The notes: generated by a model not told the origin, from the letters alone. DNA of 64,000 bases from Dicyema japonicum (GCA_011109175.1 RDEW01000108.1:1-64000); one strand, 5' to 3'. Positions 163 to 63,265 are shown, counted from the first letter of the stretch. A program made the numbers and translations.

Positions 163-485
163 ATTTATTATTATTATTTATTAACCCCGGATACACCGAG
201 AAAGAAGTTAAAGTAAACAACTAATTAAGTTATCCAGTTTCCACTTATACAGAGTCCATCCGGAATCAGCATAAAAGGTAAGACGTCCATTACATGCAGT
301 TGTGGAAACCCCTCCAGTAGAGTGGGGGAGAGCAAATGATATTTTTTCATGCCGGCCTTGCACTGGGCGCCACCTAGACGGGTGAATCACATGACGCCAC
401 TCTAATAGGAAGAGAGAGGAGGAATAGATGAGCAAGCAGAAAACTTCAATCAATTAACCACGCAGCACCACATGGCGCCACGCGT
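163..485 (-). mobile_element. Non-autonomous SINE-like element, family A1 (hairpin head + pseudoknot core + Vingi-like tail)
   Basis: Near-identical to 47325-47631 (-) and 2323-2628 (+). (TAA)n tail; core motif at 337-398. Confidence 0.85.
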
Positions 486-584
486 TGGTATTTTGAATTA
501 ATAAATGCGTAGCACGGTATTTTGAAAGTCACGTCGAATGAAAATATTAACGATTAATAAATAAATATTAACGAAAATTTGGTT

Positions 585-2318
585 TTAATGCAAGTTGGCC
601 AGAGTAGCTGGTTTTCAGAAATTCAAGGGTCATTTTTGCCTAAGGTTGATTAAGTTAGCCAACCATGACTTTAATTTAGGGTGGATTGATGTAGTAAAAA
701 TTTTTGCTGTAAGGATCTTCCGAGATACTGAGTCAAAAGTCTTTTCTAGATAAGTTGTTGTTGAGTGTCTTTCGCGGAATCCATGTAGAAAAGATGTAGA
801 GTTATGAAATGACGGATCTTGAGAATGACTAGTTTTTCTAACACTCGTGATATGGCGCAGATGATGGATACCGGTCGGTAGAAGATATGGCGCAGATAAG
901 TTTTCTCAGGATAGATTGTGTATCAGAGATTCATATTGAAATGTTCTCGTTTATTGAGAGGTTGAAAATTTGTGTTATTTTGGCCGTCACGGAATGACCC
1001 AGGTGTTTCAGTTAGAGAATGAAGATGTCATCTGAACCGCGGGACGACAAGTTATTCATTTTCCTGATTACTGAGTGGACTTTGATGAAGGGTTGAAGAA
1101 GTCATGTTGGAAATTATTCCTTCGACCATTGCTAGAATGATAACATCCATGTCTTTTGAATATGGTTTATGACTAATATTGGATATGGCTCTTGATGTCC
1201 AATTAAATGTGGAGAGCACTTCTTAAGCCTCCTTATCGATTTACATTATACAGTGAGGGAAGTATTGTTCGTAACTTATCTGAGCAAGGGTTCCCAACGT
1301 TCTTTGCTGTTTTTCGTGATGTTCCGAGTGATTTCTTTGTTCAGTTTTAATATCCTTTCAGTATCGGAATGTATCTTTTGCGATCTCGGAGTATAATCTC
1401 ATTGAGGTATTCGACAGCAGCGTCGATAGATCCGAAGTTCTCTATCTGGAAGGTGTATGTGTAGTTCGATAAAAGATGTGAAGGCGGGCCATATTGTCTT
1501 TAAAAGTTCACATTTGTTCTCAGAGTGTTCATTAACTTATGTTTTTGTAGATCCTCATGAAGATCGGTTATGGTAGGTATGTAAGTCGTATATAAATCCC
1601 ATAAAATGACAGCCTCAAGAGAAGGGGCGGCAAAGAAATGTCTGGTAAAGTAGGGGAGTCGCCTTGACGGGAAGGGACCTTGTGTGTTTGCTTTGATTAT
1701 TGAGAGTGATCAAGTCGTCAAAACTGTCCAAATATAGGGGCCCCGTTGATTCAGTTGTTGGTCAGCATGCCATCGAAAACTCTTCGCATTTAAGTCACGC
1801 CAATTAGCGTGTGTTCCAACAGAGTGAATCGTTGAGTTCAGGGCGGTAGCCTTTTGGGCATGACGGTGGAGAAGGTACTTATATATTGACAACTGTCAAT
1901 CGGAAAGAGGGTAGGCAAATTTTCTGAGTTAGTTGCACCAGTGTGTCGTCTTGGTGGGAGGGGTCCGGGATGTCGTCCGAGATATTTATAATCATTATAT
2001 GCTTCCTGATTAAAGTAATTAAATTTCCTTTCTATCCATGACCTCTGTCTCGTCTGAAAACGTTGTTTCCCTTAAAGTTGGGGGTTGATCGCCGTGGGTT
2101 AAGTTTGGTATCTCGGGAAAGAGCTATATCCATTGAGTGTTTTATGAGAAAGAGTTGTAGTTCGGCAATTTTTGTTCGGATAGCATTGATGTTAATTTGT
2201 AATGTGACTAAATCTGGTCCTGGATTTTCCTCGACATCTCCACAGGAAGGAGTAGGATTCGACACCATCCGCGCGGGATAGGGAGTTTGTGACTCTTTTC
2301 CAACCTCGTGAAGTAATA
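585..2318 (-). mobile_element. Ingi/Vingi-like non-LTR retrotransposon, 5' half: 2A peptide, APE endonuclease, start of RT (degenerate)
   Basis: Minus strand gives CGDVEENPGP, then LQININAIRTKIAELQLFL, VVNIY and DLNAKSFRWH (APE motifs). A degenerate RT N-terminal region follows. 3' end missing. Confidence 0.8.
2215..2267 (-). other. 2A (StopGo) ribosome-skipping peptide N-terminal to the APE domain
   Basis: tgg tgt cga atc cta ctc ctt [t]cc tgt gga gat gtc gag gaa aat cca gga cca = WCRILLL(S)CGDVEENPGP after restoring one T. Exact D-V-E-x-N-P-G-P motif. Confidence 0.85.
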
Positions 2319-2322
2319 TATA

Positions 2323-2628
2323 GCCGCGTGCGCCATGTGGTGCTTGCGTGGTTGAAGTTGAATTCTGCTTGCTGTCTGTTTCTCCTCTCTCTTCTTATTA
2401 GAGTGGCGTCATGTGATCCACTGTCTAGGTGACGCCCAGTGCCAGGCCGGGACGAAAAAGGATCATTTGTTCTCCCCCATTCCAATTGGAGAGGTTTCCA
2501 CAACTGCATGTAATGGACGTCTTACCTTTTATGTTGATCCGGAGATGGACTCTGTAGAAGTGGAAACTGGATACACTTAATTAGTTGTTTACTTTACTTC
2601 TTTCTCTGTGTATCCGAGGTTAATAAAA
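2323..2628 (+). mobile_element. SINE-like element family A1
   Basis: Head GCCGCGTGCGCCATGTGGTGC, pyrimidine tract, core motif 2405-2465, tail ending TGTGTATCCGAGGTTAATAAAA. Confidence 0.85.
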
Positions 2629-2652
2629 TTTTATTTATTAACCCAAGACCAC

Positions 2653-3475
2653 GGTTGAGGTGGTGACGTCCCTCTATTGCACATATGAAAATACGTATTT
2701 GAATATCCTTTCTGGTTTCTACCCTACCTTCAATGCCAGGGGGCCTTAATGATTGATCGAAGAGGCACCTACTATGTCTGACCTTGCAAAATGGATGCTC
2801 TTTGCTGTCTCCAAGAGACGAAGCTCAGAAAAGGACTCGATGAAAACCTTGGAGACTACAGACTAATCCTCCTTCATCGTACTGTAAACACTATGGACAG
2901 GGTTTCGCTGTTCACAAGAATTTGCTCCCCAGATTACATCGATATTGGNCAACACGAATTGCCCCTCTTGATAATAAATTTAGAGGCAAGGATGAATGGA
3001 AAATCACTTCATGCGTATCCGAAATACATAACTAAATTCACTGTTTTAGACATGTATGTTTTTCAATTTCTTAGTTTTAATTATTGCGCTCCTGTCTTTC
3101 TCATCTTTATCACTGCTTGACCAATTCTAATAATCTGAAGGATGTCTAACAACTGTATTCGGTGACTACGTGCTCTTCTCCTGTATCCTACATCGAGAGA
3201 TTGAAAGCTCGTTCACTTGATCATAGGCAGATACTTGATTCCTTCTTTGGTTTTTTATCGCACTCGTGTGAAACGCGGTGAAAATTCAATATGGCATGGT
3301 TCTCTATACAAAAAAGCATCGCATGCAAATCTAGGCAAAATTGGAGAACCTTAGATAAGTCTGATGAAGAACAAGTTAGTTTAACGAGAGATAATAAAGT
3401 TTAGGATAAGCTCCGATTTGTCCCGAGAACAGACCTCATCGAGAAGAGGATTGTGAAATTTAACATAAAAAACAA
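2653..3475 (+). mobile_element. RTE-clade LINE remnant: 5' end, APE start and C-terminus, with the middle deleted
   Basis: FNARGLND...DALCCLQETKLRKG is RTE-type APE. The 5' end is shared with 42597. C-terminal region resembles other RTE ends in the window. Confidence 0.65.
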
Positions 3476-3789
3476 GCAATTAAAAAAAGTTAAATAATCC
3501 TTATTATTAATAACAACCACATACAGCATCAAACATATAGTATTTTTTCTTTACAATGCACATGACATGACCGGGAGTCGAATTCAAAATCAGTAAGGAT
3601 AAAGTCTATTGAATCCAGTCCATACACGTTAGAAAGATCAAGCCGACTGGAGGAATTTATAATAATTCGTTCCTCCTTTAAGCGATTTGTCAATTTTTTA
3701 TTGCTTTAAAATAATCAGTTCATAAAGTTGGTTAGCATTAAATATAGGTTTTAAGGTTTGTCTTACTTATTGCAAGATTACTGCTTTAA

Positions 3790-6100
3790 GACTTGTAGCG
3801 TAATTGTAGCGTGCCGTTATGTGGTCCACCAATTCAAAAAATTCAAAAGGATTTGGCAACGCCCAGGGGGCTTCTAATGCCCTCCTGAAAAGGTCCATTA
3901 GACCCTTTTCTCCTGGGGTCATTATCGATCCCCCGGCGATGTGCTTCAAAAATCCAAAATTCCCGGCGAAAACTCTCAGCCCGCTGTGGAGAAAGAAATT
4001 TACTGCTCTCCAATTGAAACATCAACGGAATTAAAGCAAGGTCAGGAACTCCGTTCAATCCTGGCAAATCAGAAGATCGACGTGGCCATGATTCAAACAA
4101 CTAAACTCCGCATGATGATCCACTCTTCATTCCCTGGATACGAGGCTATCAGGATAGACCGTAAAAAGAGAAGAGGGGGTGGACTACTTACTCTATTCAA
4201 AAAGAACCTGAAATGCAGAGACATTACTTCGGAAGTGAGGAAACTTGTTGGAAATGACGAGGTTACTGAGGCAATTGGAATTTTGCTTGGGACAACAAAA
4301 GGAAGTATGTGCCTCGTGAATATCTACTTGCCTCTTCCGGCTCCTGCCCAAAGGACTATGTTATTCCAAACCTATCAAGATTGGCTATCTACGATGAGAT
4401 AATCATATGTGGAGATTTAAACGCAAAGCACCCATTATGGTTGTCAACCCAACAGGCCGACACGAGAGGAAGCTATTGTTATTGAAATCAGACTCCCTAA
4501 CGATACTGAACGATCCAGCGAAAAATACAAGGACCCCACTAAGAGAGATGGATCAGCCTACCTCACCGGATGTAACACTCTGCTCATCGTCGCTTTCATC
4601 AAAAATTGATTGGTCAGTCTTCTACGAAACAAGAAGCGACCATAATCCAATTGTGATGAAGGTCATGAGAAAAGTCAGAGTGAGGAGAACACCTGCTAGT
4701 TATAACTACAAAGCTGCTAATTGGGAATTGTATCGCGCAATCTCTGATGATAGACTGAAGAATTGTTACTTGGTCAGCTTCAAATCGCTAGAAAAAGCGA
4801 TCAAATACTTTACTTGCACAATCCTAGAAGCAAGATCATTGGCTATTCCCAAGCATCGTCTAAATTCCTCTAATGATTGAGAGAAGTCGACATTGACCAA
4901 AGAAAGAAATCACTTCAAAAAATCTAATTGGATCACATTAGAAACGAAACTCCGGATCAGAGCTCTAAACAACGAAATAAAGGACAGAGAGTTCAAGGCT
5001 CAGAAATTAAAGTGGAATCGGATTCTTACAAAAATAAATCGCAACCATAGTACCGGAGAAGTGTGGAAAGTTATCCGAAATGTTGCAAAGTGCGAAGAAA
5101 CTTCCCCGAGGATGACTATACTCAACGAGACGTTAACAATTTGATAAAATTCTACACAAAAATTTCGTACAGAGAACACAGAAAGTCGGAAGTGCTTCTC
5201 TCTTCACGCAGAAAACTGAAAAAGGATTCTAACCCAGTTTACTACTCGGATGAAAACGTAAAGAATGCGCTGCGTTTTACATAAACAACGTCCTGACAAC
5301 ATTCCAGTAGTGTTATTGAAGAACCATGGAGATATGGGAGTCGATTTTCAACTATTCAATTAATTAAAATGTAATACCGTTGTTGTGGAAGCAACGACAT
5401 TGTTTTGGTCTCGCGTGATCGGGATACCAAAATGCTACAGAAATTAACCTGGACCGACTCAACGCTTGGGTAATGAAGAACCGACTCACGATAAATTCCA
5501 GAAAGTCGGTCACGTCTATGTTTACTTCGGACAAAAGGTTGGGGAAGATGACAGTCAAGTTAAAATTGGACAACGTTGAAATCCCCTTCAGCAAATGTCA
5601 GAAGATCCTGGGCGTGACACTGGATACGCACTTATGTTTGTCACCACACGTGGTAAACATTGTTCTGAAGTGCGAGAAGAGGATCAATGAATTAAAATGT
5701 TTATCTAGAATATGAAAGACAGGTACCCACCCAGTCTTGATAAACATTCACAAACAATACATCGAACCATGCTTCTCGTACGCGTGTGCTTCGTGGGGAC
5801 CTTCATTATCATGGACGAACACTAAGAAAATCGAGGACGTTCAAAAGAAGGTTTTCATAATGACAGAGCGGTGATCTTGTGGGAGACACAGAACCGGACC
5901 GACTACTCTAGAGGCCCTCATTAAACAAAACTCCGGCATACGGGAAGGTGACCTGCAAATACAGTCAGCCTCCCAGTACGAGCTTGTGTGGGTACGAGGG
6001 AGGAGCACCGGAAAAAAATGAGGATTTTGGCGGAACGCATCGGGATCACGTGATAGTTAGTTTTGGTTTTACCGTGGTCTTGGGTGATAAATAAAATAAA
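3790..6100 (+). mobile_element. Vingi-like LINE (family B), both ends present but RT core deleted
   Basis: 5' structured motif 3813-3897. APE motifs: IDVAMIQTTKL, GGGLLTL, LVNIYLP, CGDLNAKHP, SPDVTL, SDHNPI. Jump to DDIVLV/KILGVTLD near 5400-5620. ORF ends RIGIT*, followed by the 3' UTR and A-rich tail. Confidence 0.85.
3813..3897 (+). ncRNA. Candidate HDV-like ribozyme fold in LINE 5' UTR
   Basis: P1 gccgtt/aacgcc, P2 tggtcc/ggtcca, P3 acc...ggc (loop expanded by an AATTCAAAA duplication), P4 gggggc/gccctc, J4/2 starting with C. Same layout as the SINE A cores. Confidence 0.6.
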
Positions 6101-6212
6101 CTGCTTTAAGAAAAAGAAAGAGTCCTCAACTAAATAATTCAATTCCCGAGGTCAGAGTTGGACTCATCAATTACGATCATCACGTCCATCCATATCCAAC
6201 ATTGTGGGAATT

Positions 6213-6530
6213 TTTTTGAGCACTACCGCGTTGCCATAAGCACGTAAGATGCCTAGGGTTTCGCTCGTGCAGAACACACACTTTATTTGAGTAAAGAACA
6301 GTTATTATAACTAATCGTAGAGAGAATCAAGGAATGCTCTTCACTTCTTTGTTTTTTTGTGTGTGTTCTTTTGACTATCCAGTTCTGCATTGAATCTTCA
6401 TTGATGACAGCGTCACTCGTCAAGCCCTTTCCGCATCATAGATGCGTGGAACCTTCCACCAGGTGAACAGCAGCGAGAATCGAACCCGTGACCTAAGCCA
6501 CTTTAACCCGACACCTAACCACTATGCCAC
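6213..6530 (-). mobile_element. tRNA-derived SINE (family B), full length, with 14-bp TSD
   Basis: A box TGGCATAGTGG and B box GGTTCGATTC at the 5' end. TSD ACATTGTGGGAATT at 6199-6212 and 6531-6544. Second copy at 47660-47985. Confidence 0.9.
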
Positions 6531-7150: not shown

Positions 7151-7355
7151 TTTTATATAAGTAAATAGTATTAAATTAAGGCAGTTAACATATCGACCAT
7201 ACGATGTGAATGATAAAAGTAATTCCTCATAAAAGGTTCGTCAATGGATGGTTGATACATTATAAATCAACAGACATTATAGTTGACTTATACTATAAAA
7301 TTGAATATATAATTCATTACAATTTAATAATAAGCCGGAAGATATTTATATTATA

Positions 7356-7600
7356 GCGTGGCGCTATGTGGTGCTACGTGGATAGTTTGTCATTGGTGCT
7401 ACGTGGGTAGTTGTATTTTCTTTCCTTCCGATGGCGTCATTGGATCCACCTTACTGAGGAGGCGCCCAATGCCTGGCCGTCATCAAGAGGATCCAATAAT
7501 TCTTCCCGGGGACAACGTCGTTACCTGTTCTGGAATGCTGGAACGAGTCAGGATCGAGGAGTTAGTTAGTTTGGTTACCTTTGGTCTTTGGAAATAATTT
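7356..7600 (+). mobile_element. SINE-like element family A2
   Basis: Head GCGTGGCGCTATGTGGTGCTACGTGG, core 7433-7494, tail TTAGTTAGTTTGGTTACCTTTGGTCTTTGG shared with 27830, 38325, 56120 and 63030. Confidence 0.85.
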
Positions 7601-7984
7601 TAATATTTCATGTAATTGCTCGTATATTTATAGGTTGGTATATAAAACTATTTGACATTGAATACTTATAAAAAATGTTATCAATTTTATTATTTTGAAG
7701 TTGTATTATATATTTCGAGCATACATCATCCAAATACTTACTCAATATTTATAAGTTCTAATAATAATTGATTTTATTCATCATGATGTTATATGTAAAT
7801 ATTATTTATCTACAAGTCCGTAAATAATACTTGGGTCCTCCTACCATACCCACTACCAAATTAATTGCACAGTGATGGACATATGTGAGTTTGTAGACTA
7901 CAGAGATTTATTAACAAGAGTTAAGGAGTTTTCTGGAGGGTATTACATCTGATTCCTACCATACGGCTTGAACTCTACACTTCC

Positions 7985-8844: not shown

Positions 8845-9035
8845 ACTCGTGTAGTTATTAGTTGTGAGTTTGATTCCCACCCGTTACCTACTTGTCCAAA
8901 AGATTTTTAACTACTCTGGACTTTCTTCTAGTCTTAAGTGCATGTGATCCACCTGTCTCAGGAGACACCCAATGTCTAGCCGATATCCAAAAAAGGAGCA
9001 CTATCTTCCCTACTCCACTGGAGGAAGTCTATAAA
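8845..9035 (+). mobile_element. Family A variant with Pol III B-box-like head
   Basis: GAGTTTGATTCCCAC (B-box-like) at ~8866-8880, then core CATGTGATCCACCTGTCTCAGGAGACACCCAATGTCTAGCCGATATCC...GGAGCA. Confidence 0.65.
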
Positions 9036-13149: not shown

Positions 13150-13385
13150 TGTCTGTAAATTTTTTTTTTAAAGCCTTTTCACGAGAGCCATAGTATTTTA
13201 TAGCTCCGCATAGGCAGGACACACACTTTATTTAAGTAAAGAACAGTTAATTTTAACTAATCGTAGAACCAAGGAATGATCTTCACTTCTTTTTTTCTTT
13301 TTCTTGTGTGAGTGTCCTTTCTAGACAAATCCAGTTCCGCAGTGAGTATTCACTGATGACGGCGTCACTCGTCAAACCATTTCTG
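13150..13385 (-). mobile_element. SINE family B, 5'-truncated, alternative tail
   Basis: Body matches 6213-6530. After AATAAAGTGTGTGT the tail is CCTGCCTATGCGGAGCTATAAAATACTATGGCTCTCGTGAAAAGGC, as at 39430-39590. Confidence 0.8.
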
Positions 13386-15565: not shown

Positions 15566-15627
15566 NNNNNNNNNNNNNNNNNNNNNNNNNNNNNNNNNNN
15601 NNNNNNNNNNNNNNNNNNNNNNNNNNN
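15566..15627. other. Assembly gap (N run)
   Basis: Run of n characters. Confidence 0.95.
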
Positions 15628-15841
15628 CCGCTTGACATTGTTGAAAGAGGAGATCTACGGATTAGGCTTATAAACATGAACCCAAATATTGAGAAACTTG
15701 TGTCTAACTTTTTGCAACATCATTGTTCACATAATATTTCCCAACTCGTTACCATATAGGTTTTCCTGGTGAGCGATATTTTTTAAAAGTTTGTTAAAGC
15801 GGGCGATGACCTGTATAAGTTTGGGAACCCCAGGTCTATAC

Positions 15842-16320
15842 ACACCTGTGTTTGTCACCACACGTGGCAGACATTGTTCTGAAGTGCGAGAAGAGGATCA
15901 ATAAATTAAAATGTTTATCTAGAATATGAAAGACAGGTACCCACCCAGTTTTGATAAACATTCACAAACAATACATCGAACCATGCTTCTCGTACGCGTG
16001 TGCTTCGTGGGACCTTCATTATCATGGACGAACACTAGAAAATTGAGGACGTTCAAAAGAAGGTTTTCATAATGACAGAGCGGTGGTCTTATGGGAGACA
16101 CAGAACCGGACCGACTACTCTAGAGGCGTTCATTAAACAAAACTCCGGCATGCGGGAAGGTGACCCTGCAAATACAGTCAGCCGCCCAGTACGAGATTGT
16201 GTGGGTACGAGGGAGGAGCACCGGGAAAGAATGAGGATTTTGGCCGAACGCATCGGGATCACGTGATAGTTAGTTTGGTTTTACTGTGGTCTTGGGTGTT
16301 AAATAAAATAAAATAAAAGG
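15842..16320 (+). mobile_element. Vingi-like LINE family B, 5'-truncated copy
   Basis: Nearly identical to 5630-6100. Ends ERIGIT* plus GATAGTTAGTTTGGTTTTACTGTGGTCTTGGG tail. Confidence 0.9.
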
Positions 16321-20897: not shown

Positions 20898-21524
20898 TTA
20901 AGTTTCTGTGTAGCACTCCGCTCCATGTGATATATTGGTCCACTTCATATCTTGTCTTGACTTGATCGCTTCCTTTCTAGAATCTCTCTGTATGGGAATC
21001 ATTTTCTTGTATGCATCTTTCATAGCAGGACATTCTCTGTAACGGACATTATGTCCTGGTCCTCCACAATTAATACAATTTGTCTCCACGTTTGGAGAAA
21101 ATTCACACACAACAAGATTGTGCTTCCCTCCACACTTGAGGCACCTCTTCTTCTCCATGCAATGTGCGGCGATATGACCAATTCGTTCGCAATTGTAGCA
21201 AATAGGAGGGAGCCTCTTAATCCATTCACACGGGATCTTGTTCGACCCAATGTAGAAGCCACAACATATCAGCGATGTTGTCTCCGAATTACTACTAACC
21301 GAGGCCTTCGCCATTGGCATAGGCTGCGATCCTCTTGACATTCGGGTTACCTTCGAAGTTGAGGGAGCCATCTCCTGAAGGTAATCAAAGAGGTCGTTCT
21401 CACTCACCCAAAAAGAAATGTTCCTGAAGACAATCTCAGACGGTCTTGTTAGGAGTGTTCTAAATTGGTATTTGTCAGTTCCAAACGGACAGGTTTCATT
21501 TATGGCCTTCATATAAATGGCCAT
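20898..21524 (-). CDS. LINE ORF1 gag-like nucleic-acid-binding protein (3x CCHC zinc knuckle)
   Basis: CYNCERIGHIAAHC, CLKCGGKHNLVVC and CINCGGPGHNVRYREC in an open 208-aa ORF. Confidence 0.85.
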   Translation of the reverse strand: MAIYMKAINETCPFGTDKYQFRTLLTRPSEIVFRNISFWVSENDLFDYLQEMAPSTSKVTRMSRGSQPMPMAKASVSSNSETTSLICCGFYIGSNKIPCEWIKRLPPICYNCERIGHIAAHCMEKKRCLKCGGKHNLVVCEFSPNVETNCINCGGPGHNVRYRECPAMKDAYKKMIPIQRDSRKEAIKSRQDMKWTNISHGAECYTET

Positions 21525-21629: not shown

Positions 21630-21875
21630 CGTACTCATAGTAGAATGAACTGTGATCAATAGAGTCCTGTTGTCTATAGAATCAGCTTGAGAAAGAAAAA
21701 AAAAAGACTATATATGACATACACCCGAGAAAAAGAAAAAAAGAAGTGAAAAGATTTCCTTGATTCTTCCTCGTCGATTAATAATTAATAACAGTTCTTT
21801 GCTTAAAATAAAGTGTGTGTTTCGCCTGAGAGGAACGATATCTGATATGGCTCCTCGAAATGCCCATTGTTTTTT
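21630..21875 (+). mobile_element. SINE family B partial copy with a third tail type
   Basis: TTCCTTGATTC...CGATTA...ACAGTTCTTTGCTTAAAATAAAGTGTGTGTT matches the B body. It then continues TCGCCTGAGAGGAACGATATCTGATATGGCTCC. Confidence 0.65.
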
Positions 21876-27400: not shown

Positions 27401-27829
27401 TGTATGTATATATGTGAAACAATAACTCAGGTGTCTAGTTTTGATTCAAATTGCTTAGGAGACTTGAAATAAGTATTTTATTATTGCATTTCGTTAAAAT
27501 AAGGATTAAATAAACAGTTTAAAAAATCAAGTTTTGATTTTTTACCCACGTGGATAGTCTCCTATTGTCCCCATCTCCGGGTCTCTGGGATCTTGTATAA
27601 GTGCCTAGAAATGGTTAAAGTTGAAAGTTTTTGAAATTATCATTTAAGGTCAAGCCACTTGACAGGAATGATATTGATCGAAATTATAAGACACTCAAAG
27701 TCTTCATATCTAGTTCACTCACTTTTTCGGAATTGTATTTAATTGTTCAAAACTTTTTTTACAATTAAAATTTCTAATTTATCCGGGGGTTATTTTGCCA
27801 CATACAACACTGAGCTTTAATAAATATAT

Positions 27830-28078
27830 AAAATAAAATTTATTCCAAAGACCAAGGGTAACCAAACTAACTAACTCCTTAATCCTGACACGTTCCAGCG
27901 TTCCAGAACATGTCTCTCGGAAACGAAATTGTCCCCGAAGAATACGTGGATCCTTTCCTGATGTCGGCCAGACATTGGGCGTCTCCTCAGTAAGGTGGAT
28001 CCAATTACAGCATCGAAGGAAAGGAAAATAATTATTGACCAACTAGCCACATAGCACCACATGGTGCCACGTGGCTAA
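27830..28078 (-). mobile_element. SINE-like element family A2
   Basis: Head GCCACGTGGCACCATGTGGTGCTATGTGGCTAGTTGG, core ~27948-28012, A2 tail. Confidence 0.85.
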
Positions 28079-34569: not shown

Positions 34570-34850
34570 GCTCTTCTTTACAATTACTTCAACACGTTCA
34601 ATTAAGATATACCCAGTTCTCAAGAGCGGAGTAGGACGCATCCTTCTCTAAACATCCATATCCACCATTGTTGGAACACCTACAGTGGAGCAGAGAAGAA
34701 TTCTTTTTAAATGCTGGTCAGGCACTCCCGACTCAAGTGGATCCCATGACGCCTCTTAGGATTTGAAGAAAGCAAAGAGCATAAATCCAGATGTGGGAAT
34801 CAAACTGACACCACTTAATTTACTTAAAAACCAAAAATCGCCACTACTTT
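34570..34850 (-). mobile_element. Divergent family A element with B-box-like head
   Basis: Sense strand reads TGGCGATTTTTGG...AGTTTGATTCCCAC, then GGCGTCATGGGATCCAC (core start) and GAACTGGGTATATCTTAATT (A1-like tail). Confidence 0.6.
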
Positions 34851-37900: not shown

Positions 37901-38154
37901 TAAATAAAAGACACAAGTTGAATCTACAACAATTCTCGATTGGAAGATATTCTGCTTAATATTGTTTCTTGACAGCGAATCAAAAATCTTAACTTTCAAT
38001 TGAACCGGAAAAAACACTTCATATCCAGAATAAAAAAATCATGTTATCCCGGCCTCCCTCAGCAATTGGACTTGAAGGAAATATCGTAAATGGAGAACTT
38101 ATCTGTATGGTTGTTTACTAATGGTCCTTTTGGGATATGATTTAGTATTATTTA

Positions 38155-38285
38155 TGGTGCCACCAGAGATGGTGAACCACATGATGCACGCTAACAATTT
38201 AAGCTCCCTGGTGACAAAAGGGACAAGGAAGAACAGAATAGACAATCTTCAATTCAGGTAGCCACACAGCACCACACTAACTTTG
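38155..38285 (-). mobile_element. Family A variant: head, pyrimidine tract and 5' half of the core
   Basis: GTGTGGTGCTGTGTGGCT head; TTAGCGTGCATCATGTGGTTCACCATCTCTGGTGGCACC. The upstream flank resembles the LINE 5' end at 3800-3830. Confidence 0.6.
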
Positions 38286-38324
38286 GAGCCACCGGTGTTT
38301 TTTTGGTTCAATCAATTTAAAAAA

Positions 38325-38563
38325 ATAAATTAAAATTATTCCAAAAGGGTAACCAAACTAACTAAATCGTTGAACCTGACTCGTTCCTGCATTCCAGAAC
38401 TTGTCTCCAGGTAAAGACATTGTCACCAGGGAACAAATAGCTGATCCTCTTGATGCCAGCAAGGCATTGGGCGTCTCCCCAGTTAGGTATATCCAATGAC
38501 ACCATAGGAAGGAAAATAGTTTTGACCAACTAGCCACATATAACTATATGGCGCCACTTGGCT
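38325..38563 (-). mobile_element. SINE-like element family A2
   Basis: Core 38442-38503 (P4 ATGCC/GGCAT), A2 tail and head. Confidence 0.85.
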
Positions 38564-38724
38564 AAATTTTCTAAAAATTAAACAAATAAATATAACGTCC
38601 ATTTTAGGATAGGATGGCCCACATCAAATAACAATAAATAATAATCAAATATGAACATTAAATTATTTATTTTGAATTAGTAAAATAAAAACACTCAAAT
38701 TGAATTTACTGGTGTTAACTATAG

Positions 38725-38950
38725 TGTTCTTGCATGTGGTTACTTGGTTGAAATATTTGTTTGTTTCTTATGTTTCTCTTTTTCCTTTTTGGCGTCATGT
38801 GATCCACATGTCTCAGGTACGGCCCAGTGCCTGAATAGGACATAATTGGATCATTTCTCTCCCATTGGATGGACTCTGGTTCTGTGACAGTGGGAACTGG
38901 ATGCACTTAGTTGGTAACTTTTTTCTCGGTGTATTCGAGGTTATTAATAA
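38725..38950 (+). mobile_element. SINE-like element family A1, internally deleted
   Basis: Core 38791-38853; tail CTCGGTGTATTCGAGGTTATTAATAAT. Confidence 0.75.
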
Positions 38951-39429
38951 TAATTAACATTCAACAGTAAAAACCCGTATAAGATATACATTCATAATCA
39001 TTTCCTAATCATGGCTCTATTCCGAGCAACAACCTGATAAAAAGGGTTCATCTACGATTTATAAACCACCCCTTCTAACAACCTACGTACGTTAACTTGA
39101 TTATGTAAAAGATGCTCTTTGTTTTTTGCAACTTCTCAGAGTTGACAGCAAATTACTTTTTTGAATGTAGTACGCTGTTTGTCTACCATGCCTAAGTGAC
39201 CGATCCATGGAGCAACCGTCATTTGCTGGTTTACTTATTAATTGCTGGTCTCCTATAGGTTAGTTGGTCGGGGTTACTTAACTAATTATAATCATAATAT
39301 AACGCTACAAGGTCGCTGAGAGATAACCTGAACTGAACTAGAAAAAATAGAACAAGCAACTGCAAACCATCATTGGAGAGTAGTGGTCGAGTAAGACTCC
39401 AATTAAAAGATTTATTTCCTTCCACAAGG

Positions 39430-39590
39430 TCAGGAAATTGTCTAAGATACACACAAGAAAAAGGAAAAAAAGAAGTTCATTCCTTGGTTTTACGATTAGT
39501 TAAAATTAACTGTTTTTTACTTAAATAAAGTGTGTGTCCTGCTATGCGGAGCTATAAATACTATGGCTCTCGTGAAAAGGCTATTAAAAA
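39430..39590 (+). mobile_element. SINE family B 3' part (tail type 2)
   Basis: Matches 13150-13300 in reverse orientation. Confidence 0.8.
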
Positions 39591-39904: not shown

Positions 39905-40430
39905 CAGTAAAAACTCTCGAATCCGCCAAATTTGGGACATATGTGCGGAATTAGGGATAATCAATAGGAATAAAATTAATTATTTTTGAGGATTCTTTTA
40001 TTTTCAAACAAGACAATTAACATATTTTTCTTTACCTACATCAGTTTCGTCGACAATAAAATAATGTTCTCATTTGAAAATTGTTTCAATAATTTTAGAA
40101 ACCATCCTTCAGTTAGAAGCTCTACAATATCACGGCGTCTGTTTTCCGAAGGAATAGGATGATCATATTTATATAAAAATTTACAGTTGCAGGATTTCGT
40201 AGCTTAAAATCGGTATTATTTTAGGATAAATTCTTGAGCTAGATCATTAGCAGAAACAATCAGGAGTAGAGTCATTTTTAATATAATTATGCAATTTATT
40301 GTTCGTATTTGAGTCTGCCTGTGTTTTTCTACAAACCATTGCTTCTTCAGAGATCGAATTCCCATCTTCAGATATGAGGCTACTCATAAGATTCTCAAAA
40401 TGATCCACGAATTTATTAATGATCTTTTTG
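39905..40430 (-). mobile_element. Tigger/pogo-like DNA transposon remnant
   Basis: TA + CAGTAAAAACTCTCGAATCCG terminus at 39903-39925; a degenerate IVDET (DET-G) motif on the minus strand. Confidence 0.4.
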
Positions 40431-40445
40431 GATATAATTTATATA

Positions 40446-40530
40446 TGGCGCCACAAGAGATGGTGAACCACATGACACTCGCTAACAATTCAAGCTCCCT
40501 GGGACCACATGCTTATGGGTAACGTGGGAG
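40446..40530 (-). mobile_element. Family A half-core copy
   Basis: Homologous to 38155-38210; sense strand reads GAGTGTCATGTGGTTCACCATCTCTTGTGGCGCC. Confidence 0.6.
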
Positions 40531-44817: not shown

Positions 44818-45505
44818 CAGTTTTTTATATTTACTCTTGTCTTTATATTACACAGATTTTTTCCAAATAAGAATTTATCAGCCCCTTAGAATCAACCTGA
44901 TCTATGTGAACGAAAGCATGGCGCCACAAAGTAGCAACTAGCATCAAGTCAGACTTTTGGAGAAGTTGGTGAAGTCAGGGTTATTTAACTGAGTCACTAT
45001 CACCCTCTTTGATATGACTTGCTAAGTTTCTAGCAGCTATTTAGTTGTGGCTCTGATGAAACTCAAAGGGTTTTGGTCCTCCAGTGGCAAGAATTTTTAT
45101 TATTTTTCATGTTTTTTATCTTCCCTTGTTCTGCTAGATTGGCGTTTTTTTATCAAGCGCCTGCTCAGTGCTAGGGTGGGACGAAAAGAATTAATTCCTT
45201 CTCCCACTCCATTAGAGGGTTGGATGTTTTCTTCTCTTCCCACTGGTTGTGGATAGACTTACAGTGGGACAAATATGTCATGGCAACCCTACATAAATTC
45301 AAAATTTTAATTTTTATAACAAAATATAAATATTTCAACATAATTTAAAAATATCTAAATTTAAATAACTGTTCTCTATAAAAGTTTATTATTGTTTAGT
45401 TGATTCATTATTTTTATCGATGCGAATCTCAATTTCAAATTTGATTTTTTTAGTGGAAAAAAGTCATGGCAACATTTTGTATTGTACAAGAACATAAATA
45501 ATAAA

Positions 45506-47313: not shown

Positions 47314-47324
47314 ATAATAATTTA

Positions 47325-47631
47325 TTTATTAACCCCGGATACACCGAGAAAGAAGTTAAAGTAAACAACTAATTAAGTTATCCAGTTTCCACTTCTACAG
47401 AGTCCATCCGGAATCACATAAAAGGTAAGACGTCCATTACATGCAGTTGTGGAAACCCCTCCAGTAGAGTGGGGAGAGCAAATGATCCCTTTTCGTGCCG
47501 GCCTGGCACTGGGCGTCACCTAGACAGGTGGATTACATGACGCCACTCTATTAGGAAGAGAGAGGAGGTACAGACAAGCAAGCAGAAAACTTAACCAATT
47601 AACCACGCAGCACCACATTGCGCCACGCGGC
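47325..47631 (-). mobile_element. SINE-like element family A1 (best-paired core, 47483-47544)
   Basis: P1 ggcgtca/tgacgcc, P3 acct/aggt, P4 gtgcc/ggcac. Near-identical to 163-485. Confidence 0.9.
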
Positions 47632-47659
47632 TCTTGATCAAATACTCAAATAATTAATT

Positions 47660-47985
47660 ATTAAGCACTCCGCGTTGCCATAAGCACGTAAGATGGGTTT
47701 CGCTCGTGCAGAACACACACTTTATTTAAGTAAAGAACAGTTATTGTAACTAATCGTAGAGAGAGAACCAAGGAATGTTCTTTACTTATTTGTTTTTTCT
47801 TTTTCTTGTGTGCATGTTCTTTTGACAATCCAGTTCCGCAGTGAATCTCCACTGACAACGACGTCACTCGTCAAGCCCTTTCCGCATCGTAGATGAGTGG
47901 AACCTTCCACCAGGTGAATAGCAGCGAGTTTCAAACCCGTGACCTAAGCCACTTTAGCCCGACATCTAACCACTATGCCACCCGG
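47660..47985 (-). mobile_element. tRNA-derived SINE family B, full length
   Basis: Colinear with 6213-6530, including the A and B boxes and tail type 1. Confidence 0.9.
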
Positions 47986-56119: not shown

Positions 56120-56310
56120 AACTTTTCCTTCTGATGGCGTCACTGGATCCACCTTACTAAGGAGGCGCCCAATGCATGGCCGACATCAAGAGGATCCAAC
56201 AATTCTTCCTCGGGGACAACGTCGTTACCTGGTAACAAGTTCTGGAATGCTGGAACGAGTCAAGATTGAGGAGTTATTCTGGTTACCATTGGTCTTTGGA
56301 AATAATTTTA
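56120..56310 (+). mobile_element. SINE-like element family A2, headless copy
   Basis: Starts ~14 nt before P1; core 56136-56197; A2 tail. Confidence 0.85.
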
Positions 56311-56349
56311 ATTTAATTAATCAACGGGTTAAATTTAACACAGGTTTCT

Positions 56350-57989: not shown

Positions 57990-58063
57990 GCGAATGTTGC
58001 TTATAATAATAATAAATTTGTCGTGGCCGCAAAAAATCCCGGGGGCCGCGTTGAGAACCACTG
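57990..58063. mobile_element. Solo hAT/MITE terminus
   Basis: GGGCCGCGTTGAGAACCACTG reverse-complements to CAGTGGTTCTCAAC, a typical Charlie/Buster TIR. The partner end was not found. Confidence 0.5.
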
Positions 58064-58139
58064 ATGTTGACAATAATAAATTGTATGTAATTTATTTAAA
58101 TCAGAAACCATATTTACAGTAAATCATATTTAAAACTGC

Positions 58140-58500
58140 CATCCATCCAAAGTGGACCCCGCCGACATTATCGACGTTGCGTTGCCTCTCAAGATTGCAA
58201 CAGAGATCAACTAGAGTAGCCACCGGGTCTCACGTGCGTCGTGGCTTTTTATTGGCTAAGCGTCCAGGTTTTTTTAGGAAGCGAAGCGATTTTCCACTTA
58301 TTCCTCCAGTTGTCTCGACCACTATCGGATAAAATGCGAATCGGTCGCGTAGCGCTTCGTATTTCTTCTCCTTTGCCCTCATCGTTTTTCCGCGGAATAC
58401 AGTGTGTCTACCGCGCTCCCGACAATGTTGGACGGGCAAAGCGTGTCGACACAAGTAGCGTCCCAGACCACATGTTCTTTCAATTGGGGCCGGGCGGCAT
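58140..58500 (-). mobile_element. CRE-like RLE 3' fragment
   Basis: VVWDATCVDTL...KEKKYEALRDRFAFYPIVVETTGG. Confidence 0.85.
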
Positions 58501-58779
58501 TTGAATTATGATATTTTTTATATCGGACACTTTTCATTTTATATTGGAAAAGTTAGTTGGTTTGTTTTGAAGGTTGAGGCATTGATGTAGCTCTATTGCA
58601 CGAAATATTACTTCGTTATAATGGATGAAAATCCACGTCTTGATTTTTTTCTATAAACATGGAAGAGATTAAGAATAAATCTAAGTCTAATGTTTGTTTT
58701 GGAGGATCGGGAATTACCGTACCTTCGAATTCTTCATTAAGTGCCATATTTGTCCTCTATAGATCATCGAAGAATTTAA

Positions 58780-59410
58780 TAAACACGTCCTTAACTCTTA
58801 TTCCGGACTGAATGTATCCATGGACACCACCGGAAGCTGTGTAGTTGTGGAAGGACCTATACCTAGAGTTCCGGATGGCTGCGCTAATCAACAAGAGTAT
58901 TCGATACGTGTTTTTAAAAAAAAAGGGAGCACCTTGAGAGAATTGGGGATGGGAGAAGACTTACATGCATCAAAACGATTAGCTGCCATTCAGCAGATTT
59001 CTGGTTGAACACCTATCTTTGTGCTGAAATTGGTAACTTGCTTTGATAACGATGGTAAGTTTCGACGATGTGACAACATTCCCTTTTGCTAACGGTCGGA
59101 ACCTTGTTTGGGATGCTAAGTGTGTTTATACATACTCTCAGAAAGATTTGGCCGCTTCATTCCCGGACCCAGGTCATACTTCTCAGCAAGCCGATGATCA
59201 GAAGAGAAGTAAGTACCGAATCATTACGGAGGATTACTTGTTTGTCCCATTTGATGTTGAGATGTCAGGAATCCTTCACCCAAAAGCTGACGATCTAGTC
59301 CGTCGGATAGCTCAATGATTCAAAAGGTCACCAAGGATCCACGTGAAACTGGATAGCTCGAGAGCGTAACTCGATAGTTATCGTCAAACAAAACAGCATA
59401 AGCTTCCTAA
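58780..59410 (+). mobile_element. CRE-like RLE 3' fragment
   Basis: FPFANGRNLVWDAKCVYT...RSKYRII.EDYLFVPFDVEMSG. Confidence 0.8.
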
Positions 59411-59599
59411 CTTTTAACATTTTTTGCATAATTTAATTGAGTTTAATCTAAATTAAATTTAATACGAAATTAAAAAAAAACGTATGAGTTTTCTTTAGCA
59501 AATAAATTTAAGCGATAAAACAAACGTAACTTTAATTGAAGAAAAAATAGAAAAAAGACATTAACACTCGGAAAGTCGTAGCCGCAAAGTAAATTAAGG

Positions 59600-59810
59600 A
59601 CCCTTTTCGCTCTAACTCTCCATCAGATTGGTAAAGTTATTTAGCTTTGCTCCTTTCTCTTTAGGTTTTTCCTCTCGACCGTGATTGTGATCGAAGGAGA
59701 TCTCTCTCCGCTGACAAGAAGAATCGCATCAGATCCTCTCTGGAGGGACCCTTGCGAGCACTTAGCTTCTCCTAATCAAATACGAAAATCCAGGAGTCGA
59801 GATTCGAATG
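59600..59810 (-). mobile_element. RTE (BovB-like) 3' fragment
   Basis: Degenerate homology to the 18530-18885 C-terminus. Confidence 0.45.
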
Positions 59811-59879
59811 AGGATCAATAGTCAGTTATCATGGAATTATTCGAAGATCGAGAGGTCTACAAAAAACAATCCGTCACAT

Positions 59880-60110
59880 CCTGTCTCTGACAGGGAAACT
59901 AAAAAATATTCCTTATGTAAATTCCGGATCGAAAAATGGAAACTCTAAAAGGCTATATAACCGGATATGTGGTGGTTGGCTAAGATATTCGATCAACAGT
60001 CCTCAAGATATAGTTTCGTACATATGACGGTCAATCATCGTTATACTTTATTGACCCGAGTAGTGGTGTCATACAAAACATATAGAAACTCATTAAATTA
60101 TTATAGAATT
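59880..60110 (+). mobile_element. Merlin/ISXO2-like transposase fragment
   Basis: HMTVNH.Y.FIDPSSG.H...IE motif, allowing for frameshifts. Confidence 0.6.
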
Positions 60111-60389
60111 TGTAGTTGTACTAATTGAAAAATAAAAGAGATGGGAACCGCACGACACATCTGAACAACTATTACATATAATAAATATGGATGCAGAGAC
60201 ATAAGAAGCACTATTGGTAGCAATAGGGAATTTTCGTCCCCCAACAGCTAATTACAACTAAATGACACTTATAAATTTAATTATTTACTATTAAATTTTA
60301 AAATTATTCGTAAGCGAATAAAAATTAAATATGTAATTTTAATCAGAAGTCTTTGCAAGCAGGAAAGCAGAATCAGATGTCTTTGCAAG

Positions 60390-61130
60390 CATAAATCAAC
60401 CCATTACATGTGGAAGACCATTAAAAAGCTCAGATCACATACAAAACCCAATAACACAGGCCAACCAAATGTCCAAGAACTAAACAACCTAATGAAGTTT
60501 TATGTCGGAATCAGCCACAAGAAATTCCTGAAAACCAGCCATTCCTTTACGTCCACGAAGCCAAAAAGCTCTTCTTCATTATATTGCTTGTCACACTCCG
60601 ATATTTGGAATGAAATCAAAAATACAAAATTTTCCTTCTCCTGCGGAAAATTGGTTTAGTCAAAACCATATTTGGTGAAATAAAAAAGCCATTCTCTGCT
60701 TTCGGTATTCTCTATAAGCAATTTATCGAGCCAACAATCAGTTGCTCCTGTGCAGCATTGGGAATTAATCTCTCGTGGACCAACCGTCTTAAAGTTGATA
60801 ACACCCTATGTCGAGCGTCAACTACCATAATACACATCGCAAAGCTGAACAACATTCCACCCAGTCCCTTTGACCACCTTATTGAGCAAAACGGCAAGAG
60901 CTTCTTGACGTTAACCTCAGCAGGACCTGTTGTCGACAGTCCCTCCTGTATCAAGTTTCCAGAAGCACATCACCCCAGTTAGCTTTCTCACGAACCCTGT
61001 CCTCCGCCCATACATGAATGTGTCGGGTCAATAGTCCAGCATCTGGAGAAGTGAAAACTCTTCAGGATTGTCGGGATCACCTAATTAATTTCAACGAGAT
61101 TAACTATTGATGTTTTTGGGTTAAATAAAA
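60390..61130 (+). mobile_element. Vingi-like LINE remnant with large internal deletion
   Basis: WKTIKKL...LMKFYVGISHK linker joined to a C-terminal region ending IVGIT* plus tail. Confidence 0.7.
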
Positions 61131-61323
61131 AAAACTGTTAAAGCGATAACCGTAAAAATTATGTCATAAAGCAATAACCGTAAAAGCCAAGAACCGTTCG
61201 ACGAGTTGACCGTAAATATAGACATTCACAATATAATCACCAATGTTTAAAATATTCTAAAAATAAGTCAAAAATATAAAGATAATTTTAATTTACTAAC
61301 AAACAAAAAATTAAAACAAAAAG

Positions 61324-62180
61324 TTAAAAGATTAAGTTTTTCTTAGTCTTTCTAATAATCTTTTGCAGTTTATTAATTTTGTTTCGCTGTTCAAGCATAG
61401 TTCTCCATTTGTCTTTCAGCATAACAGTGTTCTTTTTGGAAGCAATCCAGTATCACTCATGACTTTCCAATTACCGCACCCAAATTTCTGACTAATTTAT
61501 AAAACATAATCTCTTCCTCCAAAGTCCATTTCCGACGCTTAGCTAAAAATTTAGTTTCGGAAAACAAACTTTTGGTGAATGAGATTCATTCCTTAATTTA
61601 TTTTCGGTAGTTAAATCAGGTTTGTATGTTGTCTTTAAAAGTCGGAGAGGTTCTGAACTCATTAAATTTACTTCTCCGTGCTTTGTAGGGTTCAGTCGAT
61701 ATTATTTCAGTTGAATCTTCACATGAATCAGAATTTATTATTGGAATATTTTTATCAACGTTCTCGTATTTAATATCTTCATGTCTCACGTCGACAATTT
61801 CAATGACTTTTTTATCTTCTGACTTAATTTCATTCAACTCGTCACCACTGCTAATAAGAGCCTCAGTACTTCAGACTTTAAAATTTTAACTAAATTAATG
61901 TTTTATTTCAAAAAACCAAGTTGATTTGAAATATTCGGATCGATAAAACAGAACGGACGAATCTGAAACTAAACCAGCATTGTCAAAATAACTTCTAAAT
62001 AGCAATAAGTTTAATACAGAAACTCCATACTCATCGAGCGTCGACTTTATGATGGAATAAACCTAATACTATCATTATAAATGTTTACTTCATTGAGAGA
62101 ATTTTGGTTACTACTATATTCGAGTAGTTCAACTATAAATTGGATCATTTTATCGTTCTCAGACATAACTTAGAACAACA
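61324..62180 (-). CDS. Telobox Myb-domain protein (TRF1/TRF2-like telomeric repeat-binding factor candidate)
   Basis: C-terminal KRRKWTLEEE...LG.GNWKVM...KRT.VMLKDKWRTM after restoring two single bases. Preceded by a charged linker (ORF 61616-61837) and a 27-nt GT-AG intron. The 5' boundary is approximate. Confidence 0.75.
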
Positions 62181-62339
62181 AGAAATAATAATATTTCCGC
62201 GCAAAATTTAATTTTTTAATTTATTTTTTAATTTAATTAATTTTATTTTTTTAATTAAAATTTTTGTAGTCAAATTTTATCCAATATGTGATTTAAAAAA
62301 ATAAACGATTTACTACTTCGTAAACATATTAATTGAAAA

Positions 62340-62570
62340 CAAAAACTTGGAGTTAGGAAACCGCAGCCTGACTGCATTGCTATTCCTTTTTTAGGAAACC
62401 GCAGCCTACTGCGAGGGAAATACGCTTGAATAGCAAACAGCGTTCGCAAAGGTCCCCTAAGCGGGTTGACATAAGATTTCAAGTCCTTCGAGAAAAACGT
62501 AGGACAACTGTCCCTGAGTTCGAAGATTTCCACAGGAAGAGGGACAAACTTCTCCTCATTTGGGATATTA
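62340..62570 (-). mobile_element. CRE-like RLE 3' fragment
   Basis: FVPLPVEIF...TRLGDLCERCLLFKRISLAV; nucleotide similarity to the 48085 end. Confidence 0.65.
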
Positions 62571-63029
62571 GCGTACTTTCACCACTTTAATTTCAGATTT
62601 TTTACTTATATTGTTTATTTAGTTATTTACCTAATAATTTACCATCTAAAAAGAAAAGTCATAATGCAATCAAAAGTGAGGATTAACATAGCTCTTGCTA
62701 ATGAAACTGGAACAATAAAAATTAAACCGTTGAACATTGAAAAATTTAAATCCAATTAAGAAGTTAGAAGGGTTGATTCAAAGGAATAAAAGACAGAAAC
62801 AACAATTTATTACTTCCTTAACATAATTTTTGATTTTAAATTTTTGTTACATTTTTTATTCTGATATATAAAAACATAAATATTAATCACAATGAAATGA
62901 GCATATTATTACAATCTGAAAGGCATCCAATTTTTTGTTCGGATTAACGAGGGTTTACTGCACATTCATATAAAATTGAATAAATTATTACTGCAGCTGC
63001 GAGTTGTTATGTAACTACTTGACTGAAGA

Positions 63030-63265
63030 TTTATCTTCATTTCCTCTAATGGCGTCAATGGATCCACCTTACTCCGAAAACGACCGATACCTGCCTGGCA
63101 TTCAAAAGGATTCATCTATTCATCTTTGGTGAAGAGTTTTTGAATCGACCTTAGCTTCCAGAGAACATCCTCTGGATCACTGTGCTTGGGTGAGGGTAAC
63201 CTGGACTGCGTCAGGATCAAGGAATTAGTTAATTTTTATCACCATCAGTCTTTGGAATAATTTAA
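63030..63265 (+). mobile_element. SINE-like element family A2, divergent headless copy
   Basis: Core 63051-63114; tail GTCAGGATCAAGGAATTAGTT...GTCTTTGGAATAATTT. Confidence 0.7.

Follow-up and report, generated by a model that had tools for sequence, protein, structure and literature searches.

Ribozymes like that of hepatitis delta virus (HDV) at the 5' ends of long interspersed nuclear elements (LINEs) are established for R2, RTE, L1Tc/Ingi, LOA, R1 and R4 (PMC5786205), and are known both in LINEs and in their internally deleted derivatives (PMC3185411, PMC4035085, PMC3414825, PMC3774820). They act in the processing of LINE RNAs and are able to initiate translation (PMC3185411, PMC3774820, PMC13725137); self-cleavage alone can start cap-independent translation (PMC13725137, citing Ruminski 2011 for retrotransposons). 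Here we analyse a 64,000-nt stretch of the Dicyema japonicum genome (GCA_011109175.1, RDEW01000108.1:1-64000; hereafter the window), in which an HDV-type motif of ~62 nt heads a LINE and is the core of at least five families of repeats resembling short interspersed nuclear elements (SINEs). We favour, as rather probable, the view that this motif is a local, divergent branch of the family of HDV-like ribozymes that resides in 2A-bearing LINEs with a single open reading frame (ORF) for an apurinic/apyrimidinic-type endonuclease (APE) and a reverse transcriptase (RT), and that it has been carried from there into short non-autonomous elements.

L1TcRz/Pr77 (L1Tc, NARTc, ingi/RIME and SIDER; PMC3185411, PMC4035085, PMC3383444) is, like the motif described here, an HDV-like ribozyme that falls within the initial ~77 nt of an APE LINE with one ORF and an N-terminal 2A; it too forms a block common to non-autonomous derivatives and may double as a promoter. 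L1Tc also shares the GGU directly before the 3' strand of P1 (P1'), as read from the primers printed in PMC3185411. However, L1Tc cuts at element position +1, whereas here a conserved 11-nt leader (in the LINE) or 50-100 nt of head and linker (in the SINE-like elements) lie upstream. Further differences are the metazoan host, the absence of RNase H from the nearest full-length relatives, and an activity that is here a predicted one; the comparison is one of architecture. The R2 ribozyme and the R2 short internally deleted elements (SIDEs; PMC3774820, PMC3414825) likewise place an HDV-like fold at a LINE 5' end and keep it in internally deleted non-autonomous copies, with a P1 of 6-7 bp whose 5' strand position sets the cut site, a variable P4 and a J1/4 of 0-2 nt, all as here. 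Yet R2 is site-specific and co-transcribed with 28S rRNA, its ribozyme defining the RNA 5' end, whereas the elements here are dispersed, show target-site duplications (TSDs) and keep upstream sequence of their own.

Among short elements, SINE2-1_AMi and SINE2-1_ACar, which have Vingi 5' ends, and the RTE-derived bipartite SINEs (PMC5786205) also join a head, a LINE 5' piece and a LINE 3' tail, and as here they come from single-ORF LINEs that also yield bipartite non-autonomous derivatives. That study describes no ribozyme fold in the bodies of those SINEs and argues that a ribozyme would truncate a SINE; here, by contrast, the part taken from the LINE has an HDV-type fold whose helices show compensatory changes, and a hairpin made from a copy of the LINE 5' end serves as the head. 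The LP-SINEs of gastropods and bivalves (Matetovici 2016, PMC4758252), compared by description only, carry a ~70-bp LINE 5'-end block, a proposed promoter, that is common to mollusc SINEs and otherwise unrelated LINE families; there the block is the head, whereas here the complete block is internal and a partial copy serves as the head. Identity with the Ceph domain was considered and rejected, as its signature strings CCTTGGGAAAG and CCTCCAGCTATGGGTTAAATAGT (PMC5786205) do not occur in the motif. In the literature searched, we found no paper linking cephalopod repeats to HDV-like ribozymes, a search with the motif string returned no relevant paper, and a survey of 2A-bearing LINEs (PMC3708506) makes no mention of ribozymes.

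A nested double pseudoknot with compensatory changes

The window is eukaryotic, repeat-rich and 37% G+C. No motif copy overlaps its assembly gap (15566-15627) or either isolated N (2949 and 53022); the related feature nearest to the gap is a 5'-truncated LINE piece at 15838-16311, and no result hinges on sequence continuity through the gap. An original prediction, made on the sequence alone, had described the motif as repeated about 12 times in a LINE and in SINE-like repeats, and all 12 copies are present at the positions and on the strands it gave. We built a covariance model from 10 SINE copies, its nested part comprising P1, two P3 pairs and P4, and scanned both strands of the window without filters. 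These 10 copies score 62-82 bits (E 1e-16 to 1e-21), and the scan further returns 34699-34753 (minus), 40420-40479 (minus) and 45156-45194 (plus, beginning inside P1'), with weak matches at 3813-3885, which is the LINE copy, and at 38122-38188 (minus). Such a model, proposed as a check with the prediction, thus recovers the copies and adds three to the earlier list, namely 40420-40479, 38122-38188 and the truncated 45156-45194.

The strand order is P1-(J1/2)-P2-P3-L3-P3'-P1'-(J1/4)-P4-(J4/2)-P2', that of a nested double pseudoknot, in all 15 copies that we parsed by hand into a structural alignment, every row being verified against the sequence letters; the same order is found in the outside loci L001, L004, L009, L011 and others described below. 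P2 is 91% paired across the 15 copies, with exchanges between U-A and G-C, A-U and G-C, and C-G and U-A, while P4 is 82% paired and shows replacements of the whole helix. Both carry several canonical pair types per position, and their scores are reached by only 1 (P2) and 0 (P4) of 2000 partner shuffles. P3 is ACC/GGU without variation, except that family B and copy 8936 have GGA and with it an A.A mismatch. P1 is 80% paired, the SINE copies differing in it almost exclusively by wobble, and true double changes are found in LINE lineages only. The claim that the pairing survives sequence change is borne out by the compensatory changes in P2 and P4. The earlier description of single copies needs amendment: GCCGUU/AACGCC contains one C.C mismatch, the P1 of copy 8936 is broken, and copy 34698 has no P1'.

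A second count, made on an unfitted MAFFT alignment of the 10 SINE copies only, gave 82.9% pairing against 31-55% with the partners slid. Only two pairs show double changes, P4 holding both of them, and the covariation score is attained in 21 of 500 shuffles. The covariation looked for in the alignments is thus strong across the 15 copies but modest within the 10 SINE copies, so that the strong signal lies between lineages.

LINE origin and relatives with the motif ahead of 2A

The window holds two 2A-type LINEs with the motif or a remnant of it; the features are as follows.

3791-6099, plus strand: decayed, internally deleted single-ORF APE LINE, with APE pieces at 3941-4402 and 4407-4880 (Pfam Exo_endo_phos_2)
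3791-3812, plus strand: LINE leader, ahead of the predicted cut and made up of two tandem units of 11 nt, ACTTGTAGCGT and AATTGTAGCGT
3813-3897, plus strand: LINE motif copy; P1 GCCGUU/AACGCC (1 mismatch), P2 UGGUCC/GGUCCA, 24-nt insertion in L3, P4 GGGGGC/GCCCUC, J4/2 CUGAAAA
1700-2321, minus strand: second 2A-LINE, 5'-truncated; 2A GDVEENPGP at 2221-2238; motif remnant of J4/2 and P2' near 2290-2300

The first LINE is flanked by an 11-bp TSD, ACTGCTTTAAG, read directly at 3780-3790 and 6100-6110, and a DNA contig of the same organism lacks 3783-6102 (joint 3782->6103); therefore 22 nt of inserted DNA precede the predicted cut. The motif had been placed in a LINE 5' untranslated region (UTR). 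It does head the LINE, but it is not the extreme 5' end, and it lies inside the 2A reading frame rather than in an untranslated leader. The leader unit AATTGTAGCGT recurs as AATTGTTAGCG before the motifs of family E and as TTTTTAGCG in the Octopus sinensis locus L001. The unitig of the LINE locus ends at 3832, and other copies share sequence from ~3803. Position 3867 is A in 90% of genomic copies, which turns a G.U pair of P4 into A-U. The second LINE is interrupted at its 5' end by a family A element (2322-2627).

Protein searches with pieces of the decayed LINE returned distant APE/RT proteins for the N-terminal piece, the best being an Octopus sinensis protein, and otherwise short anonymous RT fragments or three relatives. 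At the corresponding Octopus sinensis locus, L001, the covariance model finds a match at 2995-3060 (23 bits), ~75% identical to family E. This motif lies directly ahead of the 2A sequence GDVEQNPGP and the APE domain, in a frame that is open throughout, and an AUG in J1/2, 6 nt from the first P1 nucleotide (G1), is in the 2A frame. The nearest full-length relatives contain APE and RT and no RNase H; this is the architecture of relatives P0021, P0032 and P0125, while P0065 has RNase H, a comparison of architecture only. RNase H is present in Ingi and absent in Vingi LINEs.

An N-terminal NPGP is found in 22 of the 135 proteins retrieved, and we examined the loci of 8 of the NPGP proteins together with 73 more reached through a 6-sequence 2A/APE alignment. 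A mismatch-free generic HDV descriptor matches L004, L009 and L011 within the 450 nt upstream of 2A, where at most 0.7% of randomised regions match. In a larger set, it matches 5 of 70 regions, against 4 matches in 1400 randomisations and none downstream of 2A or on the reverse strand. Allowing one mismatch and holding J4/2 to CAAA gives matches in 9 of 78 metagenomic 2A-LINE 5' regions, as opposed to 1 of 780 randomised ones (~0.1 expected). The nine outside ribozymes lie 102-285 nt upstream of NPG and share RCC-UNNNCGC-GGU and a J4/2 of CAAA(U), while their P1, P2 and P4 sequences are unrelated. In most of ten loci the 2A frame begins to be open no more than ~20 nt from G1, and in several the stretch from G1 to 2A holds no in-frame AUG. 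That the frame is open is partly a selection effect, because several loci were picked for ORFs reaching far upstream of 2A; L001, the top match, was not picked by upstream ORF length. The search of related taxa thus finds the same architecture in Octopus sinensis and in the nine metagenomic regions. The prediction that a divergent HDV-like lineage, or some derivative of such a fold, serves as a mobile cis-element agrees with the topology, the LINE origin and the spread into SINE-like families, and related LINEs carry textbook HDV/CPEB3-like versions at the same place.

Further features of these LINEs were observed in passing. Tandem repeats span the predicted cut, 11 nt twice in the window (3791-3812) and 17 nt three times at L009:1047-1100, and are reminiscent of promoter monomers. 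Between ribozyme and 2A, in the 2A frame, a run of U5-6 is followed within a few bases by a G+C-rich hairpin at L004:1128-1170, L005:421-455, L006:396-430, L007:370-420, L009:1190-1225, L010:555-595 and L011:309-350. This arrangement resembles a slippery run with a stimulatory hairpin, and is absent from L001 and the window copies. A conserved G+C-rich block with CCUCCC/GGGAGG complementarity in the LINE 3' UTR (5940-6030, plus; 16159-16220, plus; 63825-63886, minus) is probably the 3' recognition structure of the LINE. At 3202-3370, all DNA contigs differ from the window at several positions, and together they have ~10 times the depth of the contig belonging to this locus, so that the LINE appears to have inserted into one copy of a low-copy repeat.

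Anatomy of the SINE-like elements

Self-BLAST and alignments place the motif inside short repeats. From 5' to 3' these consist of a hairpin head, 20-50 nt of pyrimidine-rich linker, the motif itself, a body that differs between families and, last, an A+T-rich end or LINE-type tail. Family A elements are ~310 bp long and those of family B ~210-260 bp.

174-484, minus strand: family A element; head hairpin ~455-484, motif 337-398
2322-2627, plus strand: family A element inserted at the 5' end of the minus-strand 2A-LINE; motif 2405-2465, one base deleted in ACC
47322-47632, minus strand: family A element; head hairpin ~47597-47632, motif 47483-47544
7350-7604, plus strand: family B element with a partly duplicated head; motif 7433-7497, P2 of 9 bp, tail homologous to the LINE 3' end
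27821-28078, minus strand: family B element; 16-bp head hairpin ~28040-28078, motif 27948-28011
38318-38565, minus strand: family B element; motif 38442-38503
56123-56318, plus strand: family B element whose truncation point lies in the linker, 13 nt ahead of G1; motif 56136-56200
63005-63274, plus strand: diverged family C element; motif 63051-63113, LINE-like tail
38736-38954, plus strand: element with a family-A-type tail; motif 38791-38853, P1' and P4 decayed
8867-9000, plus strand: element with a different head, containing AGTTTGATTCCCAC; motif 8936-9000, P1 broken
34698-34806, minus strand: degenerate copy in which a deletion takes out P1'; same AGTTTGATTCCCAC head motif
38115-38290, minus strand: family E element; LINE-type motif 38122-38188, P2 UGGUUC/GGACCA, A+U-rich P4, leader AATTGTTAGCG kept, head upstream; ~76% identical to L001
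40412-40502, minus strand: family E copy; motif 40420-40479
45156-45194, plus strand: 5'-truncated family-A-like copy beginning inside P1'

In families A, B and E the head folds into a hairpin of 11-16 bp. Its 5' arm can be aligned to the opening ~27 nt of the LINE, which comprise the leader, P1, J1/2 and the beginning of P2. In families B and C the tail shows homology to the LINE 3' end (~75% over 55-60 nt). These two families are thus bipartite LINE derivatives: motif and head match the LINE 5' end, the tail matches its 3' end, and there is no ORF. For the tail of family A, no LINE partner was found within the window. The head, linker and motif of element 27821-28078 together give a folding z of -4.5, and DNA contigs show that other genomic copies carry the C that is absent after 2420 in element 2322-2627. 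ARAGORN found no tRNA in the window and Rfam nothing in the heads; the B-box-like AGTTTGATTCCCAC occurs in the heads of two copies only (8867-9000 and 34698-34806). By summed contig depth, a rough measure that is not copy number, the SINE-like families and the LINE 3' end run to thousands, and the LINE 5' end is about one tenth as abundant. Were the genome that of a cephalopod, these repeats would belong to the large SINE load carried by cephalopod genomes. We also considered whether the GGCGCC of the head could act as an alternative P1 strand and move the cut to the element 5' end; this was rejected as the main reading, since the head's own leader is also retained and the complementarity between head and P1' does not covary among the window copies.

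Possible ribozyme activity and the readings of the fold

The local motif compares with the HDV-like core as follows. P1 is 6 bp, GGCGUC/GRCGCC, its 3' strand contiguous with P3' in all lineages and its decay falling mostly at CpG. ACC/GGU closes an L3 of 6-7 nt in A, E, L001 and L004; the exceptions are family B and copy 8936, where GGA leaves only 2 bp beside the A.A mismatch, and the window LINE, with an L3 of 24 nt. A candidate P1.1 between the first two L3 bases and J1/4 would read UG/CA in A and X, AU/AU in E and UU/GG in L001, the two sides changing together between A and X on the one hand and E on the other; it would be a single pair in family B and is absent from the window LINE. J4/2 opens with a cytosine followed by an A-rich stretch in every window lineage (CAAGA in B, CCAAAA in E, CUGAAAA in the LINE), as in L001 (CUAAAAA), though in family A it reads C-GAAAA only with a one-base register shift that opens the last P4 pair. 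HDV and CPEB3 share with the motif the nested double pseudoknot, a C followed by NAA in J4/2 and, apart from the exceptions just named, a 3-bp P3 closing an L3 of 6-8 nt. In HDV, a U at the start of L3 and a G near its end form a U.G reverse wobble, and the L3 of CPEB3 is UUCACGU, a sequence that the UNNNCGC of the outside LINE relatives resembles. The local motif differs from both in that its first P1 pair is G-C, not G.U, the conserved L3 G is absent in A, E and L001, and Rfam finds no match.

A number of observations weigh against an active ribozyme in the window. The L3 loops of family A (UGUCUA), family E (AUCUCU) and L001 (UUUUCU) lack the U..CGC signature, while family B, which retains U....G., has the A.A mismatch in P3, together with a P2 of 9 bp and no J1/2 spacer; G1 pairs with C, not U. 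The proposed comparison with Rfam HDV-like models came back negative: there is no ribozyme match at the gathering score over the whole window, none at E<=10 on a single copy (47400-47650), and no ribozyme, tRNA or 7SL match at E<=10 on four sub-regions. The HDV-type models concerned (HDV_ribozyme, CPEB3_ribozyme and the drz families) are lineage-specific, and pseudoknots are beyond what they can represent. None of the window copies passes the mismatch-free generic HDV descriptor. A first generic descriptor gave only A+T-rich chance matches in the window and missed the real copies, because each has at least one deviation, and element 47322-47632 is the only window copy to pass a family-specific one. 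As to the statistics, the 15-copy alignment is hand-fitted and its shuffle test ignores relatedness. Nested minimum-free-energy folds of single motifs are no better than shuffles (z -1.5 to +0.5), which is uninformative because the fold is a pseudoknot that nested models cannot show.

The element 5' ends point the same way. None of 14 copies starts at G1; 22 nt precede it in the TSD-flanked LINE, the leader being conserved in family E and L001, and in the SINE copies 50-100 nt, made up of head and linker, remain ahead of the predicted cut. Such retained upstream sequence is unlike what an efficient 5'-processing ribozyme would leave, and, judged by their sequences, catalysis by the SINE-like copies is doubtful.

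One way to read these points is that the HDV-descended fold is now catalytically dead and kept as a structured 5' module, for example a binding site for the LINE protein or a translation element, which the SINE-like elements would retain because they must mimic the LINE RNA at both ends. The 5' RNA of R2 is bound by the R2 protein. Here compensatory change has preserved the helices while the family signature is gone from L3, LINE and SINE copies alike conserve what lies upstream of G1 and none of 14 starts there, and family B combines its A.A in P3 with a 9-bp P2 that leaves no J1/2 spacer, a spacerless P1-P2 junction having abolished activity in one HDV-like ribozyme (PMC4908430). An active ribozyme behind a SINE head would, moreover, truncate the SINE (Kojima 2018, PMC5786205). 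Yet the J4/2 cytosine and A-run are retained in all lineages, as is P1, which chiefly places the cut; the single copies are old and decayed, and master copies may be intact; and HDV-like ribozyme cores tolerate much variation (PMC3774820). We regard a dead fold as possible, if rather unlikely. A purely DNA-level role, in which the block is primarily an internal promoter and the RNA pairings secondary or incidental, could draw on the SINE head copying the first ~27 nt of the LINE, on the tandem repeats over the predicted cut (11 nt twice at 3791-3812, 17 nt three times in L009), on element 5' ends lying 7-11 nt upstream of a P1-like GGCGCC, and on precedents proposed for LP-SINEs (PMC4758252) and shown for L1Tc Pr77 (PMC3383444). 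It leaves unexplained, however, both the compensatory changes in P2 and P4 and the presence of the same fold with unrelated sequences in nine other LINEs. We think it quite improbable as an alternative, and more of an addition, because promoter and ribozyme coexist in L1Tc. That the complementarity arose by chance in an abundant repeat, with no RNA-level meaning, is barely credible: the nested folding energies are unremarkable and the covariation among the 10 SINE copies alone is modest, but slid partners pair at 31-55% against the 83% observed, and the chance reading is already contradicted by the strong covariation across lineages and by the fold's independent recurrence ahead of 2A in other LINEs, ~100 times as often as expected by chance.

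The fold and the LINE origin are solid, and the covariation, the position in the frame and the anatomy of the elements are likewise shown. We return to the reading of the motif as a branch of the family of HDV-like ribozymes, from which we infer catalysis, a role in translation and a reason for the SINE-like elements to keep the fold. The ribozyme family would form the first ~65-75 nt of the LINE coding leader, some 100-150 nt before the 2A, and the LINE RNA would fold into P1, P1.1, P2, P3 and P4 with a cytosine opening J4/2. The ancestral reaction, probably still that of the LINE, would be self-cleavage 5' of G1, a role we propose because of the precedents of L1Tc, R2 and cleavage-driven cap-independent translation. 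Cleavage would free the LINE RNA from an upstream transcript, leaving an uncapped RNA whose frame opens at the ribozyme itself, and 2A would then discard the ribozyme-encoded leader peptide from the endonuclease/RT protein. We envision that the same module was carried into short elements, where compensatory changes have maintained its helices. In these, and in full-length LINE copies, cleavage at G1 would not make the 5' end; since upstream sequence is retained and no copy starts at G1, it may be that full-length copies derive from uncleaved RNA alone, or else that the local fold cleaves weakly and is kept for its structure.

A related proposal, tentative and in our view unlikely, is that the fold is the selected core of a SINE superfamily for a job other than making 5' ends, as a handle for the LINE protein at the 5' side of the RNA or as a ribozyme switched off in full-length RNA by the head hairpin or by linker pairing. 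The pyrimidine linker is predicted to pair with J4/2-P2' in 3 of 5 copies, nested folding being biased toward such pairing, and the head hairpin hides a second copy of the P1 strand; these predicted interactions may bear on the SINE-truncation paradox. If the proposal were true, it would give the SINE central domain a concrete function, a question open for decades, and would resolve Kojima's paradox.

Taken as a system, these elements add a group of LINEs with the ribozyme inside the reading frame and 2A after it, an arrangement that recurs in many metagenomic LINEs, and they offer a simple reason for an N-terminal 2A in LINEs, namely the discarding of a leader peptide dictated by RNA structure. 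A second addition is several abundant SINE-like families in which the fold, its helices showing compensatory changes, is retained behind a head. A fold in mid-SINE is unusual, the literature searched treating a ribozyme behind a head as self-defeating, and these families are a live example of the paradox set out by Kojima (PMC5786205). Element 5' ends upstream of the predicted cut separate having the fold from using it to make the 5' end.

Two further repeats of the window were noted. An ORF with CCHC zinc knuckles, gag-like, at 20898-21524 (minus) is probably part of another retroelement. An unrelated, motif-free repeat with a clear tRNA-like head occurs at 6213-6530 (minus), 47708-47818, 13202-13383, 39444-39542 and 21717-21821, with GGTTCGATTCTCGC on the minus strand at ~6470-6483.

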